Shown here: positions 2,700 to 23,548 of the stretch, piece after piece
Layout: each line of letters begins with the position of its first letter
Numbering within the stretch: position 1 is the stretch's first letter
Sequence record: MN047793.1
DNA: 64,000 bases
Strand: one strand, 5' to 3'
Notes under the pieces: generated by a model
What the model was told of the DNA's origin: nothing
Database searches by the model: none
What the model saw: only the letters and a program-made list of their open reading frames with translations
Position numbers and translations under genes: made by a program

Positions 2700-2999
2700 T
2701 TAATTTTGGTACTTGCGACGTATATCACGTTCATTTGTCGCCAGTCTATTTTCCAACCCATTAGTTTGTTGGGTGAGGTGACTTAATGCTCTACGAATTA
2801 CTTCAATCTTAGTTGATAGTGTGGTGTCAATCTTTTTTAGATAATTATCTGTCTTTAAGTTATACGATCGCTGATGTTTTTCCATATCAGCAATCTTAGC
2901 TCGCAAGGTTTTAATCTCGCGATCTTTTTCACGCAACGCAGAATCGACCTCACTCCTAAGTGAGGCCAATTCTTTTTGTACTGATTTTAAATCATCCAT
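2700..2999 (-). CDS. Hypothetical coiled-coil protein
   Basis: 99-aa heptad-rich ORF overlapping the exonuclease stop. Confidence 0.6.
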   Translation of the reverse strand: MDDLKSVQKELASLRSEVDSALREKDREIKTLRAKIADMEKHQRSYNLKTDNYLKKIDTTLSTKIEVIRRALSHLTQQTNGLENRLATNERDIRRKYQN

Positions 3000-3579
3000 C
3001 GATACAATTCCTAAAAATCTTATTTAGAATTCTATAAGACTTCAAAGTATATCTGATGTCTTCTAATGCGTTGTGTTCTTTACGTGGAGGGAATCCAATT
3101 TTCTCAAAAAGTTCATCCGAATCAAATGCACCGACTGCTAACAGCCCAACGGGAAATGAATCTAATGCTCTATGTGAAATTTTTAATTTGATATCAAATT
3201 TACGTAGTAATGCCTTAAAGAATGGTTTATCAAAACTTACTACATTATGACCCAACAGTGTTATAGCACTATTAATATCAAAATGCTTCATTATAAACTC
3301 TACGATAAGAATGGTAGCCTCTTCTTCATCAATTCCATTTTCTTCTAAGTATTCTTTACTTAGTCCATGGATTTCTTCAGCCTTAACATTCCACTGCGAC
3401 TCACCATTCCATTTAATTTCTAGGTATAGTGAGTCAATTTCCGCGTATGTAGTAACATCACTTACGATAAGGCCAATGGATACCATTTGGTACCCATCTG
3501 AGGGATCATCACCAAATGCCATACCACTGGTTTCACAATCAATAGCTAAAATCTTGCTGAAATGACTTCCCCTGCTCAT
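2992..3579 (-). CDS. DEDDh 3'-5' exonuclease (DnaQ-like superfamily)
   Basis: ExoI AIDCETSG, ExoII GHNVVSFD, ExoIII HNALEDI. Confidence 0.85.
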   Translation of the reverse strand: MSRGSHFSKILAIDCETSGMAFGDDPSDGYQMVSIGLIVSDVTTYAEIDSLYLEIKWNGESQWNVKAEEIHGLSKEYLEENGIDEEEATILIVEFIMKHFDINSAITLLGHNVVSFDKPFFKALLRKFDIKLKISHRALDSFPVGLLAVGAFDSDELFEKIGFPPRKEHNALEDIRYTLKSYRILNKIFRNCIDG

Positions 3580-5480: not shown

Positions 5481-5859
5481 GAGTCTTAAGTACGCTGTAC
5501 TTTACCGATTCTGTAGCGTTTTTGAATTCATCTTTTACGGTATCAGTTTGGTCAATCATACTGGTACCTTCGTCGGTTAATTGACCAGTATCATCAATTA
5601 GATTATTATTGACAAGAGTCTCTTGTCCAGCGTCAGTAACTCCTGCACGCTTTCCTGTATCATCTATATTAACTAGACCCATACTACGAAGCTGCTGGCG
5701 GGCCTGTATGACGTTCTCTGAGCCGGTAGTGGTGTCGTATGCAGTCTCAGGCGTAGGGGCTGCATAGATGCACACAAGGACGTTCTTCTGAGTGTCAGTA
5801 AGTCTGGCAGCGGGTGGAGCTTGTGGCGGTAATGCCGCCAGTTCTTTTAGAAATTTCAC
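5473..5859 (-). CDS. Hypothetical protein, possible winged-helix fold
   Basis: LTDTQKNVL...LRSMGLV...VTDAGQE pattern; resembles 55913..56398. Confidence 0.55.
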   Translation of the reverse strand: MKFLKELAALPPQAPPAARLTDTQKNVLVCIYAAPTPETAYDTTTGSENVIQARQQLRSMGLVNIDDTGKRAGVTDAGQETLVNNNLIDDTGQLTDEGTSMIDQTDTVKDEFKNATESVKYSVLKTLI

Positions 5860-6422
5860 AATATTTCAGCCTTGATGAGATGTAGTTGTAACACGATAAG
5901 AAGAGCGTAAGGAATTGCATGCGATTTTCGTAGATCACTAGGGTCACGTTTCGTATACAATTCTTTTATTACTGCTTTCTTGTTCTTAGCATATTTATCC
6001 ACTAGCTTGATTTTATTAGGTCTGATGATCGCTAAACAATCTGCTAATTCAGATACTGAACTAGGTTTAATTTTCTGGATAGTTTCAAAATGCTTGGCTA
6101 AATGAAATAGCTTCTCAACCACTTCAGGGTCTTCTAACAGAGTCCAGTCAGGCTCTATCTTTAGTAGTTCCCGAATCTCATCTTTAGATTCAAAGTTGTC
6201 CAGAATGTTAAGGTTCAACATGTCGATTTTAAAGAAGCCATGGTCTTGGGCTTCTTTATAAGGAATGGCTGCTAAGCCACTTACTTTATCTACCGGAATA
6301 TTCTGAAAGTATACCCCAACATTATGCTTCTTAAGTTCTCCATTCTCCACAATCGATGCGTGAGTGATCTTAAATAAGCTGTCCGGTTTAAATTTTGGGG
6401 TAATGTCGATGTCGATATCCAT
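5856..6422 (-). CDS. dnaE: DNA polymerase III alpha (DnaE)-like C-terminal half: palm acidic motif plus fingers remnant
   Basis: Starts MDIDIDI (PDxDxD), KHNVGVYF (HAAGVVI), GFFKIDMLNL (KFDFLGL), IKPSSVSELADCLAIIRP, RKSHAIPYA (NKSHAAAYA). Confidence 0.8.
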   Translation of the reverse strand: MDIDIDITPKFKPDSLFKITHASIVENGELKKHNVGVYFQNIPVDKVSGLAAIPYKEAQDHGFFKIDMLNLNILDNFESKDEIRELLKIEPDWTLLEDPEVVEKLFHLAKHFETIQKIKPSSVSELADCLAIIRPNKIKLVDKYAKNKKAVIKELYTKRDPSDLRKSHAIPYALLIVLQLHLIKAEIL

Positions 6423-16183: not shown

Positions 16184-16873
16184 CTAGATTTTTAATTCAC
16201 TAACGATCTTTCGCATCGTATTTAATGACTTAGGGTCCTTCTTAAAGTTTTCTGCCCACGTATTGTGATCGATTACCGTTCCGATCAAAATTTTTTGTTC
16301 AGGAGAAGCTTCCGTTCTCATGTGTGAGATGAATCCTTTACTAATAAGCAGAATCCATGGACTTAACTTTCTAGCTACTACTAGTCTCATTATATCCGAC
16401 GACTCCATATGCTCAAACACTTCATCCAATTCACATTCGAAATGGTTGGATAAATCATACATGGTATCGATAGTTATTGATGCCATCTCTATGGGCGTCT
16501 TACTTGCATCAAAATGATGTAGATAGTCCGTGTAGATATCCATACTCGTCCACTGGGTTGGCATTATACCTTTATCAATCATAAACATAATGTAATGCTT
16601 ACGATCTGGGATACCTACTCGACTACAGAATTTACAAAATTCTACGAATGCATTGAAGTATTTGGACTCCATGAATACGTCCTGGCCTTTAACTGCACGT
16701 CCCTGAGCATTCATCCATGCTTTATAACAGTAGTATGCAGACTTACCTTTATTAGTCTGCATATATTCGTGACGTGTTTTTGCCTCACATTTATGCTTAT
16801 CCAGCCTTACCTGAGTGGTGAGCTTTTTGCAGCAATGTGGACATTCAAAGAAAGGTTTAACGTGTCCCGTCAT
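16184..16873 (-). CDS. Hypothetical protein with N-terminal C2H2/C2HC-type zinc finger
   Basis: FECPHCCKKLTTQVRLDKHKC. Confidence 0.65.
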   Translation of the reverse strand: MTGHVKPFFECPHCCKKLTTQVRLDKHKCEAKTRHEYMQTNKGKSAYYCYKAWMNAQGRAVKGQDVFMESKYFNAFVEFCKFCSRVGIPDRKHYIMFMIDKGIMPTQWTSMDIYTDYLHHFDASKTPIEMASITIDTMYDLSNHFECELDEVFEHMESSDIMRLVVARKLSPWILLISKGFISHMRTEASPEQKILIGTVIDHNTWAENFKKDPKSLNTMRKIVSELKI

Positions 16874-17322
16874 TTTAGTTCAGTTTTTATCTTTTTGATT
16901 TGCTCTTTATCATACCCAAGGTCTTCTGCCATGTCTAGAACATCTTCCAATGTCAACCGTGGCAGATATCCAATAGCCTCAGACTTACTAATATCATAAT
17001 ACTGTGCTATAGCGCTAACTGATACGGCAGCTTTTTTATCTTTACCCTTTTTCTTGATCCAAGAATAACGTTTAGATTTGCTGTCAGAGCATGCCGTCAG
17101 AAGTAGGTACATTAGTTTTGGGTGCTTATGCAACTTAAAGACCAAGGGGTTCACAATACTATTGATCAATTGCAACTGCTTTGGGCTTCCACTAGAAGCC
17201 CATCGCATGGTAAGTAGAGGAACAAACCCTTTTTGCTGTTCCAACGAAAGATTCTCGATAAAGGAGAAATTACCCTTATCCATTTCCTTCAACGTCTCAA
17301 AAATGTCTAATTTCTCGCTCAT
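16870..17322 (-). CDS. gp62: Clamp loader small subunit (gp62-like)
   Basis: Position two genes after gp44; F.PLLTMRWAS, HPKLMY, YSWIKKK, IAQYYDISKSEA pattern. Confidence 0.65.
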   Translation of the reverse strand: MSEKLDIFETLKEMDKGNFSFIENLSLEQQKGFVPLLTMRWASSGSPKQLQLINSIVNPLVFKLHKHPKLMYLLLTACSDSKSKRYSWIKKKGKDKKAAVSVSAIAQYYDISKSEAIGYLPRLTLEDVLDMAEDLGYDKEQIKKIKTELK

Positions 17323-17633
17323 CGTTCTTTAGGAATTGATAGTTTAGCATTACAGAACTTGCAGGATATATGAGTTCCATTATGAATCAATGAATTCTTC
17401 GGATGAATACATTCTTTCACCATGGCCTGTCGCATCACAAACACCTTATCTAGAATTTCCTGACGGGCATATTGAAGAGCAATAATCTGCTCTTCTAGTG
17501 GACTCATTTCTTGAACCACTTGCTCGATCTTCTTCTGCCGTCTACTCCAAGACAACTTCTCATTCTTGTCTGTGAAGTTAGCAACATTCTTAAGATCGCG
17601 TTCAATTTGTTCCGGCGTCAATGGTGTACTCAT
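17319..17633 (-). CDS. Hypothetical coiled-coil protein with C-terminal zinc-binding motif
   Basis: CIHP...CKFC; translationally coupled on both sides. Confidence 0.6.
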   Translation of the reverse strand: MSTPLTPEQIERDLKNVANFTDKNEKLSWSRRQKKIEQVVQEMSPLEEQIIALQYARQEILDKVFVMRQAMVKECIHPKNSLIHNGTHISCKFCNAKLSIPKER

Positions 17634-18568
17634 TATACATTACCCAGTCGGATAAACATAGCAGCAGCATTAATTTCGGGATCAGCAACTTGAGAATGAC
17701 GGAACAAATGGTCACCGATAATAACCACGCCTTGACTCCACTTATCATGATCGCCCTTAAACTTTCCAAGTTCATGCAAGTTTTCGTAAAGGAAACGATA
17801 TACTTCATCCCATTCATCATCGCTAACAACTGAACTAACTGCCTCACGGATACCTTTATAGTTATCCCCTTCAATCATTTCAACGATCTTAAGTTCAAAG
17901 TCAGCGGATTCATCGTCAGATGCTTCTTCAAATGGCTTCAATCGTCCATCGAAAGAGTTCTTATCGAGAGTTTCTAATACTTTACGGAAATCTGGATAAC
18001 ATGCGTCAACGTATGCTTCAACGTCATCAAGGTTTGCTTTGACCTTTTCTTTAGATAAGACGACTGCTGCACGCTCTAGCATTTGGTCTTTATCCATAGA
18101 CTTATATTCAATAACTTGTGTACGTGAGTCACTAAGCTCAGGAATAAGCTTCTGGGGCTTATTGCACGTTAGTACAAATCTGGCGTTATCGGAATATTCT
18201 TCCATCATAGATTTTAGTGTACCTTGCGCATTCGGGGTTAAACCATCAGCCTCATCCAATAGAACGATTTTGATATCACCCATAGCCATAGTAGAGATGA
18301 AGTTCTTTACCTTAGTGCGTACGGTTTCGATGTTATTATCATCGGATGCGTTTAATTTTAAGAAATCTACATCATCAACTTCAAGAAGTGATTTGAGTAG
18401 TAATGCAAGGGATGTTTTACCTGTACCGCGATGTCCCTTTAGAAGAACATTAGGGATACTTTTGTCCTCGACCCAGCGTTCGATCAGTTGGCGGTGTGCT
18501 TCATCCTTAAAAATATACTCATCTAGAGTTTTTGGACGATATTTGATGGACCATAGTTGTTTTGCCAT
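17633..18568 (-). CDS. gp44: Clamp loader large subunit (gp44/RFC-type AAA+ ATPase)
   Basis: KYRPKTL, GHRGTGKTS, LNASDD, LLDEADGL, FVLTCN. Confidence 0.92.
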   Translation of the reverse strand: MAKQLWSIKYRPKTLDEYIFKDEAHRQLIERWVEDKSIPNVLLKGHRGTGKTSLALLLKSLLEVDDVDFLKLNASDDNNIETVRTKVKNFISTMAMGDIKIVLLDEADGLTPNAQGTLKSMMEEYSDNARFVLTCNKPQKLIPELSDSRTQVIEYKSMDKDQMLERAAVVLSKEKVKANLDDVEAYVDACYPDFRKVLETLDKNSFDGRLKPFEEASDDESADFELKIVEMIEGDNYKGIREAVSSVVSDDEWDEVYRFLYENLHELGKFKGDHDKWSQGVVIIGDHLFRHSQVADPEINAAAMFIRLGNV

Positions 18569-18624: not shown

Positions 18625-19430
18625 GCCTCGGGAGTATCCTCAGTCTTTGAATGAGCTACTTTCTTTTCAATGTAGCTTCTTAAAGAATCCATATCCACCT
18701 TTTGCTTCTTTTCTTCCATTTCGAATAAGGCCTTCTCTGCCGCCTTTTCTTCCTTTCTGATACGAATAGCAATATTAGTGGCAATTGTCAAGGCAATTGC
18801 AAGAGGATCAAATACTGATATTAAAATTATAATGAACCAGAATACGGCAGTGTTAGGGTTCTTACCCATTACTTCTGCAATAAACATGATCGGTCCAACC
18901 TTAGCTTTTACGTTAACTTGTTGAGTTTTTAATGTCTGTAACTCTGGAGTGATTTCAGCTAATCGCGAGTCTATAACCTTACGTTCTTCCGCAAAGCTCT
19001 TTACCAGACGTTCCTTTGCTCTAACATAGTTCGGACCAACATCAGCAATTTGTTTATCTATTTGAACTTTACGCTCTTGTAATTGCTTAGTTTCCGCGTC
19101 ATACAATTCTATCTTTTGCTGCATTTCGGCTAATGGTATAGTGTCTTTTTGGTATGCTGCACTAAGGAATCCGAAGATTCCCATTGACGTAATTATCATT
19201 AGTACGAATATGGCTGATATCAAATACAGCTTTAGTGTCATACCAATACTCTTAGCATAACGATATAAAAACGATGTTGCTACTAGCTTACCTGCTTCCA
19301 GTGACGCACCCATAATGATTACTGGAATTAATGCTCCCGTAAACAAATGCGCCAATCCATATACCGAAAAGAAAGCTGCTGACGCGGCAATAGCCAACGT
19401 CACCAGTACTAGTACAACAATAAAAGCCAT
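18621..19430 (-). CDS. Multi-pass membrane protein with coiled-coil loop
   Basis: Three N-terminal hydrophobic helices, coiled coil, fourth helix AVFWFIIILISVFDP. Confidence 0.7.
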   Translation of the reverse strand: MAFIVVLVLVTLAIAASAAFFSVYGLAHLFTGALIPVIIMGASLEAGKLVATSFLYRYAKSIGMTLKLYLISAIFVLMIITSMGIFGFLSAAYQKDTIPLAEMQQKIELYDAETKQLQERKVQIDKQIADVGPNYVRAKERLVKSFAEERKVIDSRLAEITPELQTLKTQQVNVKAKVGPIMFIAEVMGKNPNTAVFWFIIILISVFDPLAIALTIATNIAIRIRKEEKAAEKALFEMEEKKQKVDMDSLRSYIEKKVAHSKTEDTPEA

Positions 19431-19741
19431 TACATAATGTCCTTGGGTTTTTCCGAAGTGACTAAAGCTACGTAACTCTCATCAGTACGCCATAGCTTCT
19501 TTCCGTCTACGTCTACTGCCAAAGTCCACTTTAGTGGGTCAATTAAAATGTAGTCACCTACTGCAACTTCTGTCACTTCTGGACCAATCTTAACTGCTCT
19601 GCCCCAACGAGCCTTATTAGCGTCAAAGTCGTTACCGGCTAACGTAAAGCCCCATTCAGTTTCATTACGGAAAAAACCGTCACGAGTAGCTTGACAGAAA
19701 TCAAAGGCAATGCTTTTCTTAAGTAGTGTATATTCGGTCAT
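19430..19741 (-). CDS. GroES-like co-chaperonin (divergent copy)
   Basis: WGRAVKIGPEVTEVAVGDYILI matches the GroES G.V.AVG....V.VGD.V motif. Confidence 0.65.
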   Translation of the reverse strand: MTEYTLLKKSIAFDFCQATRDGFFRNETEWGFTLAGNDFDANKARWGRAVKIGPEVTEVAVGDYILIDPLKWTLAVDVDGKKLWRTDESYVALVTSEKPKDIM

Positions 19742-20109: not shown

Positions 20110-20658
20110 TTATCTGAAAAATTCGCTTAACTCTAAGCCGTATTTGATAGAATCTACATCATGCAGTCCAATAAGATATAAACAATATGAGCAACATGAA
20201 CTTCCACGTCCAGTTCCCCATACCACATTATTTCTCTCAAACTCTTCAACTATGTAGATGACCACCGTTAGAATATCAACTAGATCATATTCTTTGTATA
20301 AAGCAAGTTCTTCATCTACTCGCTCCATACGCTCATCGATATCTTCCTGTGAAAAATCATCTGATGATTCTAATTCATTTAGAAGTTTAGATAGTATGTA
20401 TTTCTTAACATCGATAGTCTTATACTTATCTGGAACTATCCATGCCGTATCGTATTCACCAAATTCCGTCTTTTTGCCTAGTTGGTCTTTTGGATTGAGA
20501 CTATTAAACTGTCTAATATCTTTGGATAATTCGGTGATAAAAATAGAACTGTCCAGCGTATTGCCGGACAGTACATAGTCATACAATGCTTCTGGTTCAA
20601 AAGAAGAATCTCCGTCATACCAGAGAATTCTTCCATTGAGTTTTGTTGCATTATTCAT
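20110..20658 (-). CDS. dnaE: DNA polymerase III alpha (DnaE)-like N-terminal half
   Basis: ERVDEELALY...YIVEEFERNNVVWGTGRGSSCCSYCLYLIGLHDVDSIKYGLELSEFFR matches DnaE RL..EL..I...G.GRGS..GSLV.Y.LGIT.VDP.KY.LLFERFL; no PHP domain. Confidence 0.8.
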   Translation of the reverse strand: MNNATKLNGRILWYDGDSSFEPEALYDYVLSGNTLDSSIFITELSKDIRQFNSLNPKDQLGKKTEFGEYDTAWIVPDKYKTIDVKKYILSKLLNELESSDDFSQEDIDERMERVDEELALYKEYDLVDILTVVIYIVEEFERNNVVWGTGRGSSCCSYCLYLIGLHDVDSIKYGLELSEFFR

Positions 20659-21035
20659 TATTCAAATTGACCAGTCGTGATAATCTTTTCTCCAGCAGGA
20701 ACGCCATTGGTGGTCCCTTGGGTACGCTGCGGCTCTGATACTGCGTCTAGTGCGCTCCCTCCAGCATTAAGTACTGGCGGTGGTGCTAGCGGTGGCTGTC
20801 CACCATAGCCCAGCGGAGCTAATACAGGACCACGCATTACTTGCGGTGATGCCCCAGCCTTATTACCATCCTTCAATTTATAGATAATATCTAAAATCAT
20901 GGCCCACTGTTCGGCATTGGGTACCCAATTCTCGCCCTGTAATGAATATGCTCCATGTAACCACATTTTAAATTCATTAATTGTCCACTCAGGCTTTTTA
21001 CTCAGGTGGTTAGTTGTCTTTTTCTTAGTTGCCAT
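20658..21035 (-). CDS. Hypothetical protein
   Basis: 125 aa; TAATG-coupled to the DnaE N-half. Confidence 0.65.
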   Translation of the reverse strand: MATKKKTTNHLSKKPEWTINEFKMWLHGAYSLQGENWVPNAEQWAMILDIIYKLKDGNKAGASPQVMRGPVLAPLGYGGQPPLAPPPVLNAGGSALDAVSEPQRTQGTTNGVPAGEKIITTGQFE

Positions 21036-21047
21036 ATTAGTCTCCTA

Positions 21048-21536
21048 TTAAGGTAAAATGTCACCGACTGTACAGTCACGTAGCATTTTCGTATAGTTAT
21101 CTGTTGGCGAAATACATACCCAATGATGTGGGCCTGCCGTATGGCAGAGCATTACGTTCTTATTCATACTTGGTGTATGGATAGTTCCGTAAGTATTATA
21201 GTCAACGACGTTTACTACATTTTTTGTTACTTTATTATGTTTATGATCAAAAAGGAATGCTGAGAAATCCCCACGGGTTAGTTCCGAGATTTCGATAATA
21301 TCGATCTGGGATGTTTCGGGTGAATAAATCAGAATATTCCAGTCTGCTGGGGCTTCTACCACATAGCCACCTACGTTAAAAGCGATTACCGGTGTGGTAA
21401 TTTCTTCCAACATCACTAGATCGTTTAACATAAAGTCCCGTTCGTTAAGATTGAGGACCCAAAAATGATCTGTTGATAGTGGTGTATCGATACTATCAAT
21501 TAGTATCGGGTAGGATTTTTCATCGGAGATTACCAT
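21048..21536 (-). CDS. Hypothetical protein, possible degenerate Hint (intein-like) fold
   Basis: VGGYVVEAPADWNILI...IEISELTRGDF resembles Hint G..I..T.DH.FL...A.EL..GD; catalytic residues absent. Confidence 0.4.
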   Translation of the reverse strand: MVISDEKSYPILIDSIDTPLSTDHFWVLNLNERDFMLNDLVMLEEITTPVIAFNVGGYVVEAPADWNILIYSPETSQIDIIEISELTRGDFSAFLFDHKHNKVTKNVVNVVDYNTYGTIHTPSMNKNVMLCHTAGPHHWVCISPTDNYTKMLRDCTVGDILP

Positions 21537-21561: not shown

Positions 21562-23103
21562 TTAGTATACAACGATATCATCCACATTGTCAAATAAATT
21601 TGCGTAGTCAATGTCCCGACGCTTAAAGTTGTATTTTTGCTCATTATAGAACTTAATACGCTCCTTCATATGCTTTGTACCAAAATTAAGATCACTGCAT
21701 ACATCATACACGTTAACGCTATCCTTATCCTTGGCCTTTCTTAAACCACGACCAATAGACTGGATAATCTGAATGAAGCTCTTGCCTGGATCAATTAAGA
21801 ATAAATTGAAGATTCGTTTAATATTCAAACCTGTTGATGCCAACTGGAATGTAGACACAACTACTACGTCATTGTGATCGGTGAATAATGCATAAATTTT
21901 CTTACGAACTTCAGATTCATCTTGGCCGTATACAAAATATGCATTCTCGATTGAATCTGCTAACTTCTTACCAAAGGGAATACCATTAACCAATACGAAC
22001 GCATTTCCTGATTCTTTTACTGAAGTTTCTACAAGATTAGCAATGAATTCGATTCTCTTCTTATTCTTTTGTAGATACGTCTTTTCTGCTGGATAATCCG
22101 GATAAAATTCTTTCTTAAACTTTTTATATGTCGTCTTGGCAGCTTCTTCAGGTCTCGCATTTTTGAAGTAGTTCCACTCAGGAGTTAAATCTTCTACTAG
22201 ACAATACAACTTCAATCGAAGTGCTGCTAACCATCCTAATTCTATCAACTCACTTGCTGGGACTTCATATACAACTTCACCAAGTACATATGTCACAGAC
22301 ATCGCTTCTGCTGGTTCCTTTGGAAGGGTACCTGTTAATCCGCACCGAATGAGTGAAGTACTTCCATAATTTACGATCATATCCTTAAGAACGTTTGCTG
22401 CTGCACCATGACATTCGTCAACGATGATCACATCAAATGCCGACATTAAGGTAGGGTTGTTTTGTAGAGATTGCCAAGTAGATACTACATTCTTAGCATT
22501 AGGCTCCTTAACATCCCCAAAGTATCTACCAACTTCAATATTAAACTTAGAAATATCTGCTGATGTCTGGTTAATAAGGTCTTTATTAGGTACGATGATA
22601 ATACAACGGAAATTACAGTGCTTGTTGTATACGTCTACAAGGGCGGCGGCGGCGATTGATTTACCAGCGCCAGTACCAGCTAATAGGATTCCGCCTACGT
22701 TGCTGGTAAGAGCATTTACACCATTTACTTGATGGTCGCCTAAAACAATAGGGTTACCCTCATCGTCAGTAAAGTCACTAAAATAGTGCTTATCGATCAG
22801 GGGCACTTCAACATTAGCAGGGCTTCTGTTATCTACAATCTTTATCTTATATCCCATATGCTTCAAGTCTGGGATAATATAACTTAGTAAGTTGATTGAT
22901 GTCTTACCATTCTTATTAAAGAATCTAATCTTGCCATCCCATCTTCCTGTCTTGTATTGAGGTTTAAAAATGTATCCTTTGGTAAAGAATCCAAGGGCAT
23001 TATAAAAATGTTCATAATGCTGGCGCTCTAATCCAACGACTACAACGTTTAACTCATCCAAGATTTTAATGGTAGCGACTTGCTTAGGTTCTGATGACGA
23101 CAT
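21562..23103 (-). CDS. uvsW: UvsW-like SF2 DNA helicase
   Basis: AGTGAGKS, IVDECHG, GLTGT, ASTGLNI, QSIGRGLR; follows uvsY. Confidence 0.9.
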   Translation of the reverse strand: MSSSEPKQVATIKILDELNVVVVGLERQHYEHFYNALGFFTKGYIFKPQYKTGRWDGKIRFFNKNGKTSINLLSYIIPDLKHMGYKIKIVDNRSPANVEVPLIDKHYFSDFTDDEGNPIVLGDHQVNGVNALTSNVGGILLAGTGAGKSIAAAALVDVYNKHCNFRCIIIVPNKDLINQTSADISKFNIEVGRYFGDVKEPNAKNVVSTWQSLQNNPTLMSAFDVIIVDECHGAAANVLKDMIVNYGSTSLIRCGLTGTLPKEPAEAMSVTYVLGEVVYEVPASELIELGWLAALRLKLYCLVEDLTPEWNYFKNARPEEAAKTTYKKFKKEFYPDYPAEKTYLQKNKKRIEFIANLVETSVKESGNAFVLVNGIPFGKKLADSIENAYFVYGQDESEVRKKIYALFTDHNDVVVVSTFQLASTGLNIKRIFNLFLIDPGKSFIQIIQSIGRGLRKAKDKDSVNVYDVCSDLNFGTKHMKERIKFYNEQKYNFKRRDIDYANLFDNVDDIVVY

Positions 23104-23548
23104 GCTCTAACTCTTTCTCTCTGATCTTTACTATATTATTTAATACATAAGACCGTTGTTTGAATGCTTCAACCACACTTCTGGCTTTGTCATACAACTC
23201 TTGGACAATTAATAATACTTCGTGTACTTCCAAATAGTCAGGATTAGCATCAATCACTTTCATTATGCTACTATCCGTATATTCCCTTTTATATGTATCC
23301 TTAGCATGTTTAAATAGTTCGCCACGTACTTGATTCTCTAACATCTCCACGAACTCTAAACTGTATTTCAGTTCTACTGCGATTTCGTCATAGTAGGCGA
23401 ACCATGATGCGTGCTCGACGCAACATAGCTCAAGATTTTTACCATCAATTACTAGTTTTTCTTCCCAGCCAGCAAGCTGCTTTCTGGCATCATCGAGATT
23501 ATCGGCCACTTTGACCAATTTATCTCTCCATGGTTTTGACTTACTCAA
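23084..23548 (-). CDS. uvsY: UvsY-like recombination mediator
   Basis: Size, helical pattern, VVEAFKQRSYVLNNIVKIR; position between uvsX and uvsW. Confidence 0.7.
   Translation of the reverse strand: MSKSKPWRDKLVKVADNLDDARKQLAGWEEKLVIDGKNLELCCVEHASWFAYYDEIAVELKYSLEFVEMLENQVRGELFKHAKDTYKREYTDSSIMKVIDANPDYLEVHEVLLIVQELYDKARSVVEAFKQRSYVLNNIVKIREKELEHVVIRT

Follow-up and report, generated by a model that had tools for sequence, protein, structure and literature searches.

A free-standing, apparently non-catalytic Hint-fold protein encoded beside uvsW in jumbo phage Xoo-sp13 and its relatives

The subject of this analysis is a small gene of Xoo-sp13, a jumbo phage of Xanthomonas oryzae with a genome of 309 kb (MN047793.1). 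The window is a stretch of 64,000 nucleotides of that genome, in which each coordinate equals the record coordinate minus 124000. The gene occupies 21048..21536 on the minus strand, stop codon included, and is unannotated in the record. It runs for 162 codons from its own ATG to its own TAA; the end of uvsW lies 25 nt upstream and the start of orf125 12 nt downstream. The product, an acidic protein of about 18 kDa, is predicted to adopt the Hint fold of the inteins, complete and free-standing, and lacks the residues by which inteins splice. As a stand-alone protein without splicing or cleavage chemistry, it would be expressed as the last gene of a gp32–UvsX–UvsY–UvsW–Hint cluster. The gene is a core gene of the XacN1/Rak2-like clade of giant phages, and we infer that its product is probably a non-enzymatic binding subunit of the replication-recombination machinery of that clade.

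The assignment of the fold comes from structure prediction. An AlphaFold2 model built from a 26-sequence alignment is all-beta, with a predicted local distance difference test (pLDDT) of 91.4 and a predicted template modelling score (pTM) of 0.86. When this model was compared with the PDB by Foldseek, all of the matches listed were Hint domains, including those of Hedgehog (6tyy, E 3.5e-4), the class 3 split intein 6zgq, BIL2, and the DnaB, RecA, DnaE and VMA inteins. A VIA search of 48,161 representative chains gave as its best match the TvoVMA intein (Z 13.0, root-mean-square deviation (rmsd) 2.8 Å over 137 residues). The first 32 matches of that search are exclusively inteins, Hedgehog, BIL or Vint domains, and the next is an unrelated protein at Z 2.7. 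A second model, of a member of the most distant subgroup of the family (24% identity), has a pLDDT of 90.6 and returned the same list of Hint domains, with a VIA Z of 11.9; here too the first 32 matches are Hint proteins, and no unrelated protein exceeds Z 2.7. In BFVD, two family members came first (TM scores of 0.93 and 0.78), followed by intein-bearing viral proteins. Since the VIA alignments span model residues 1 to 144–147, we place the Hint fold proper at residues 1–145 (21102..21536, minus strand), an extent that also draws on the conservation and the sequence alignments. The original prediction had called the gene Hint-like from the spacing of five motif stretches; all five are found in the translation of the open reading frame (ORF), and the predicted fold is indeed Hint.

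Sequence comparison gives no hint of this. The Xoo-sp13 protein has no Pfam match, and among 36 diverse members of its family none matched a family of the Pfam Hint clan (Intein_splicing, Hint, Hint_2, PT-HINT, Vint, Hom_end_hint) at E values up to 5. A profile search of the PDB sequences found no intein, only chance matches to ThsA at E 0.7. The language-model neighbours of the protein include Intein_splicing clusters, at similarities of merely 0.85–0.86, which we take as a lead only. The one full-length match is to phrog_11279, a PHROG of unknown function (E 4.8e-55, residues 1–159 against profile positions 1–165 of 166), and the XacN1 orthologue is annotated merely as a "predicted ORF", ORF247. 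The relationship to Hint domains is undetectable by sequence methods and, going by the models, unambiguous by structure. A RaK2-type orthologue in Escherichia phage vB_EcoM_CRJP21 (OQ708376.1, 226500-226994) is labelled "DnaB domain-containing protein"; this label is most likely an automatic echo of similarity to DnaB inteins rather than a sign of relationship to the helicase.

What has become of the splicing chemistry? In the VIA alignments, residue 1 of the model pairs with residue 6 of most intein chains, so that the position of Cys1 does not exist; the N-terminus of the family reads M-[VIL]-I, and there is no Cys or Ser nucleophile at position 1. The stretch in the place of block B, located by the order of secondary structure elements and by the reader's mapping rather than by residue-level superposition, reads EAPADWNILI. 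It contains no His; P63 is invariant, and the residue at position 66 is aromatic throughout. The fold ends in ISPTD (S-P-x-D146) without a His-Asn pair, the penultimate residue being variable (T, S, Y, H, N, K, I and others), and D146 is followed by N/V/L/I..-Y instead of Cys, Ser or Thr at the +1 position. Across the 36 members, which reach down to 18% identity, only M1, P63, D79, P122 and D146 are invariant or nearly so, and no nucleophile is conserved. About half to two thirds of members, the XacN1-like branch among them, have the pair Cys131-His132, which is absent from the distant subgroup; Thr145 is variable. Judged by its sequence, then, the protein cannot splice, because it has no exteins and no catalytic residues: the nucleophile, the TxxH motif and the terminal His-Asn are all missing. 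The original prediction had listed Cys1, TxxH and the terminal His-Asn as lost, and both the alignments and the model bear this out.

It is instructive to set the protein beside the known Hint domains. With the mini-inteins (TvoVMA 4o1s, Npu DnaB 4o1r, Mtu RecA 2imz, Spl DnaX 7cfv) it shares the fold and a similar size, the VIA alignments covering about 125–140 residues at Z 12–13, rmsd 2.4–3.0 Å and 7–15% identity. Unlike them, it is not inserted in a host protein, its chain starts about five residues past the position of the nucleophile, it has PxxW in place of TxxH, and it lacks the His-Asn end and a +1 Cys, Ser or Thr. The class 3 inteins (AceL NrdHF 6zgq, MchDnaB1 6riy) are among the best Foldseek matches (E 7.6e-4, TM 0.59–0.63) and likewise lack an N-terminal nucleophile. 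Their motif consists of a Trp in block B, a Cys in block F and a Thr in block G, together with the block B His (PMC7664689). In XacN1-like members, W66, the late-strand Cys131-His132 and Thr145 loosely recall this Trp/Cys/Thr set at the level of sequence. Unlike the class 3 inteins, however, the protein has neither a block B His nor exteins, and since Cys131, His132 and Thr145 are lost in distant branches we do not adopt a class 3 reading as a property of the family. The Hedgehog and BIL domains (1at0, Z 12.6; 2lwy, Z 10.8; BIL2 6tmm, Z 10.1) have the same fold in non-splicing use, but they are C-terminal to or inside their cargo and carry a Cys nucleophile and TxxH, whereas the phage protein is a separate ORF with neither.

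The gene has been kept with care. A profile search of 1.84 billion representatives yielded 217 family members at E values up to 0.001; the 150 of these that are listed are 66–204 aa long, the full-length ones about 155–190 aa, with most alignments starting at residue 1 and no fusion to another protein. An intact ORF of about 160 aa is retained down to 18–25% identity. Between close relatives, whose proteins are 80–90% identical, dN (nonsynonymous divergence) is 0.06 and synonymous sites are saturated, and for XacN1 against the metagenomic relative L019 the ratio of nonsynonymous to synonymous divergence (dN/dS) is 0.028. On this sequence evidence the gene is under strong purifying selection; the dN/dS and the clade-wide intact ORFs rule out a decaying relic. 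The family is acidic throughout (isoelectric point 4.3–5.4, net charge −6 to −15), a property that speaks against DNA binding. Its best-conserved parts are residues 61–82 (xPxxWxILIxDxDTxxLD), in the place of block B of inteins, and a tail of residues 146–162 (21051..21101, minus strand), which the alignments and the conservation place beyond the Hint fold, where an intein would have its C-extein. In the tail, D146 is near-invariant (97%), Y148, K150, L152 and a G158-D159-I/L motif are conserved, and the model has a short helix at residues 157–160 (pLDDT about 78–90). The former active-site region at 61–82 and the tail, which leaves that region, would be the likely binding surfaces.

The company the gene keeps is equally constant. 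Directly upstream is the UvsW-type superfamily 2 helicase gene (21562..23103, minus strand; Pfam ResIII, UvsW_N and Helicase_C), and before it a gene for a UvsY-like recombination mediator (23084..23548, minus strand; phrog_231, E 4.1e-17, and synteny), the first gene of a UvsY–UvsW–Hint group; PF11056 is noted on a Vibrio phage homologue of this mediator. In 63 IMG/VR loci, with Hint proteins of 35–89% identity, the order is gp32 – UvsX – (orf198) – UvsY-like – UvsW – Hint, continuing downstream as orf125 – DnaE_N – orf113 – GroES-like – orf269 – clamp loader – ... – DnaE_C. Scans with hidden Markov models (HMMs) resolve this into two stable blocks: A, consisting of UvsY–UvsW–Hint, and B, consisting of DnaE_N–orf113–GroES-like–(orf269)–clamp loader. 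The Hint gene is found just downstream of uvsW in all lineages examined (the 63 IMG/VR loci, RsoM2USA, RaK2, PA5oct, Atu_ph07, Phosso, SCTP-2, XbC2, Vibrio 2.275.O, Slicko01 and the contigs L083 and L100-L103), except for the two contigs L098 and L099, which have no uvsW upstream; the context of the distant subgroup in IMG/VR rests mostly on short contigs. In Rak2-like phages an extra small ORF stands between uvsW and the Hint gene, and in L083 a lysozyme gene follows it. The median distance from the uvsW stop to the Hint start is 27 nt; the two overlap in 11 of 46 unique loci and are separated by 30 nt or less in 16 more. We considered and rejected a UvsW–Hint fusion made by read-through or frameshifting, since the spacing ranges from −17 to +1606 nt in varying frames, which speaks against conserved recoding. 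A consensus scan also found a sigma-70-like promoter match, TTGACA-18-TATACT (11 of 12 positions; 21564-21593, minus strand), which lies in the final codons of uvsW, some 28 nt ahead of the Hint ATG; it is a lead only, as such sites are no more numerous in this region than expected from shuffled sequence. Among RNA sequencing runs, none was found to contain this DNA. One uvsW homologue (L028:8446-9972, IMG/VR UViG_3300010429_000069) contains a single in-frame stop, which may be a sequencing error, a pseudogene or recoding.

The second set of neighbours is a DNA polymerase in two pieces. As the original prediction had it, the Hint gene lies two genes upstream of the DnaE N-half, a single gene (orf125, 20658-21035) intervening. 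The N-piece (20110..20658, minus strand, 182 aa; PF07733, E 2.3e-9, profile positions 15–93 of 260; phrog_11127, E 1.3e-54) consists of a novel N-terminal part of about 100 aa and a palm segment with a GRGS motif, and ends in EFFR before the catalytic Asp motif. The C-piece (5856..6422, minus strand, 188 aa; phrog_11778, E 1.6e-75; phrog_405 positions 572–693; PF17657) starts with MDIDIDI, which holds the catalytic Asp pair; further on are KIDML, the motif of the third Asp, and a short finger segment. The break point, ..EFFR / MDIDID.., is identical in all aligned relatives, without extra residues, and neither piece bears a split-intein half in Xoo-sp13 or in those relatives. The halves are 14 kb apart on the same strand in Xoo-sp13 and 34–224 kb apart in RaK2, PA5oct, Atu_ph07, SCTP-2 and Phosso. 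Since Xoo-sp13 also encodes a normal family-B polymerase, 882 aa long and ending in a tail of the T4 type, the mini-DnaE would be an extra enzyme.

The obvious comparison is with the split DnaE of cyanobacteria (Ssp and Npu DnaE; 1zde, 4kl5), likewise a two-gene DnaE-type polymerase with an associated Hint fold. There, however, each half bears half an intein and the halves are ligated, whereas the Xoo-sp13 halves have no intein sequence, and the break lies elsewhere, immediately ahead of the catalytic Asp pair. Moreover, a split intein is two Hint halves fused to extein halves, while the Hint fold of Xoo-sp13 is complete in one ORF. Because the phage protein is whole, separate and chemically dead, covalent joining of the DnaE halves is not to be expected. 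Trans-splicing or ligation to a 370-aa DnaE was accordingly rejected: there are no intein halves and no nucleophile, and the genes are far apart. In Xoo-sp13, XacN1 and RsoM2USA we could detect no canonical intein. RaK2 (NC_019526.1, 102070-103002; L111) has a weak match to Intein_splicing in an open frame of 893 aa, which falls short of the Pfam cut-off (E 1.2e-5) and has no counterpart in the three genomes just named.

Does the Hint gene travel with the split polymerase? Blocks A and B adjoin in three deep lineages: the XacN1-like phages, the Alishewanella phage Slicko01 (141 kb), and a strongly diverged group of metagenomic contigs (L102, L103). In Slicko01 and L103 the Hint gene stands directly next to DnaE_N, and in L103 the start and stop codons of the two overlap. 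In RaK2, PA5oct, Atu_ph07, XbC2 and Vibrio 2.275.O block B is far off and DnaE_C stands two to four genes after block A; in Phosso and SCTP-2 DnaE_C is about 5–6 kb downstream of the Hint gene. RsoM2USA has a distance of about 10 kb between the Hint gene and DnaE_N. Gene order is otherwise poorly conserved in this clade (PMC5852040). DnaE_C was found in 96 phage records. RaK2- and PA5oct-type Hint queries found 89 and 90 records, the Xoo-sp13-type query adds five (Xoo-sp13, XacN1, CM1, RAS14 and RsoM2USA), and Slicko01 was found by HMM; its sister Slickus01 is counted as a carrier by inference. The genus tallies of the two genes coincide, at about 96 phage records, and all 11 complete genomes with a split DnaE that were checked by tblastn or HMM carry the Hint gene. 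The distribution of the Hint gene thus matches that of the split mini-DnaE and is not independent of it. In a mirror-tree comparison of 22 genomes, DnaE_N was the best covarying partner of the Hint protein (raw r 0.78, partial r 0.48, third of 36 pairs), and UvsW ranked second among its partners (partial r 0.33).

If the protein binds something, what would its partner be? Our leading candidate, held with somewhat less than even confidence, is the two-piece mini-DnaE, the N-half first, possibly coupled to UvsW. A role as a scaffold for the two polymerase halves, as the original prediction had suggested, is plausible. In favour of the polymerase stand the shared distribution, the position of the gene near one half or the other, and the covariation with DnaE_N. 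Several observations weigh against a polymerase partner. The co-occurrence is confined to one clade, which is monophyletic (PMC5852040) and has many common core genes, so that it is only suggestive of a specific link, and genes that are neighbours give inflated mirror-tree signals. It is uvsW, not a DnaE piece, that lies closest to the Hint gene and accompanies it most generally. Where block B is elsewhere, as in the Rak2-like phages and RsoM2USA, the Hint gene is still beside uvsW, and a single rearrangement can therefore explain the proximity of DnaE_C in those phages. Finally, the short contigs L083 and L098/L099 show no DnaE piece in the few kb visible. It is tempting to go further and propose that the dead cleft acts as a non-covalent "extein clamp", holding the DnaE_N end (EFFR) and the DnaE_C start (MDIDID), two ends that must meet to form one catalytic sheet, in the way an intein holds its splice junctions. 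A two-gene polymerase would then be assembled without splicing and might also be tethered to UvsW at recombination intermediates. We consider this specific arrangement improbable.

The constancy of the uvsW neighbourhood suggests another explanation, rated below a mini-DnaE partner although UvsW is no less serious a candidate, namely that the protein is an accessory of the UvsW helicase only. It would then be comparable to T4 UvsW.1, and its closeness to DnaE a by-product of an ancestral contiguous cluster. The position directly downstream of uvsW across nearly all lineages, the overlapping or closely spaced stop and start codons, which suggest translational coupling, the retention beside uvsW when the DnaE_N block moved, and the mirror-tree signal with UvsW all favour it. 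On the other hand, UvsW is found in 1806 phage records against about 96 for the Hint gene, so that about 95% of UvsW phages do without it and UvsW generally works in its absence; the Rak2-like phages have the small intervening ORF, and UvsW.1 is itself reported in subgroup 2.2 (PMC7824862); and L098/L099 carry the Hint gene without an upstream uvsW. T4 UvsW.1 is also a small protein encoded immediately after uvsW in a UvsX/UvsY/UvsW cluster, but it is trihelical (PMC7824862), whereas the Hint protein is all-beta and restricted to the XacN1/Rak2-like clade. A somewhat less probable view gives the protein some other non-catalytic role, as a partner of the sliding clamp, gp32 or UvsX/UvsY, or as an acidic decoy or inhibitor of a host protein. 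The uniform acidity of the family and the near-consensus promoter match would suit it; but typical anti-defence genes are variable, and this is a universally conserved, syntenic core gene of a recombination cluster. For the sliding clamp there is a faint resemblance of the tail (..V/I-G-D-I/L-L..) to the clamp-binding tail of the phage's own family-B polymerase (..SLLFDSLVEY). We reject the idea of a clamp-binding tail as too thin, since the resemblance of ..TVGDILP to that sequence amounts to a D flanked by hydrophobic residues and the motif is absent from the DnaE_C tail.

Two further explanations keep a link to the intein past of the fold. The protein might retain some autoprocessing, with Asp146 cyclising to release the conserved 16-residue C-terminal peptide. 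D146 is about two residues from the position of the C-terminal Asn of inteins, at which Asn, Gln or Asp may stand (PMC7664689), and the tail is as conserved as the fold. Yet the penultimate residue is variable and not His, no conserved His of block F or block B is there to assist, and the model packs the tail against the domain with high confidence; we regard such processing as very unlikely. Still harder to credit is a functionless, decaying remnant of an intein or mobile element that once split dnaE, which is what a Hint fold without catalytic residues beside a split polymerase gene might bring to mind and what the original prediction had offered as a relic of the event that split the gene. 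Saturated synonymous sites with conserved proteins, a dN/dS of 0.028 and intact ORFs of constant length throughout the clade contradict it. So do the location of the gene, upstream of the N-half rather than between the halves, a split site without intein halves, and the want of a canonical intein in the three genomes named above.

To our knowledge, Hint domains have been described as single-turnover catalysts (inteins, Hedgehog, BIL, Vint), always within a larger precursor. What is new here, on the strength of the models, is the Hint fold as an autonomous, non-enzymatic protein. That strong selection maintains this fold in a separate, non-catalytic protein points to an undescribed binding or assembly function in a clade of giant phages that includes RaK2, 121Q, PA5oct, Atu_ph07 and XacN1. 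Two features of these phages are poorly understood, the two-piece mini-DnaE of 370 residues and the UvsW-dependent recombination machinery, and for these the protein is a candidate component. An extein clamp, if true, would be both a new non-enzymatic function for Hint domains and a new way of assembling a split enzyme. In our literature searches we found no description of this protein or of the two-piece mini-DnaE. A comprehensive comparison of jumbo phages, which covers the UvsX, UvsY, UvsW and UvsW.1 of this group, mentions neither the Hint protein nor the DnaE pieces (PMC7824862). PHROG 11279 can be labelled "Hint-fold protein, non-catalytic".

Some features of the surrounding genes deserve mention. 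In XacN1-like phages the Hint gene and DnaE_N are separated by orf125 (20658..21035, minus strand), which has no Pfam or PHROG match. Its N-terminal part is conserved and its middle is rich in Pro and Gly; it ends in a conserved aromatic tail, which in relatives reads ..D-T-S-x-G-x-Y-x-S-x-F-x and resembles a short linear interaction motif. A GroES-like small protein (orf103, 19430-19741, minus strand; phrog_931) is encoded two genes after DnaE_N in every lineage examined and is annotated "chaperonin" or "Co-chaperonin GroES" in PA5oct and Phosso. Block B ends with the large subunit of the clamp loader (17633..18568, minus strand), which is annotated in the record and syntenic in all lineages. 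The record leaves three conserved genes of the minus strand without annotation: besides the Hint gene (21048-21536) these are the DnaE N-piece (20110-20658) and the UvsY-like gene (23084-23548). It also annotates just 16870-17112 of a 150-aa ORF at 16870-17322, which matches families of the clamp-loader small subunit (phrog_225). Finally, a gene for a DnaQ/epsilon-like exonuclease lies near DnaE_C in Xoo-sp13 (2992-3579, minus strand), and one lies between the UvsY-like gene and uvsW in RaK2 (NC_019526.1, 109915-110736) and in XbC2 (OP292654.1, 204559-205434). The presence of such a gene in the Hint/DnaE_C cluster hints at a mini-assembly like that of DNA polymerase III.

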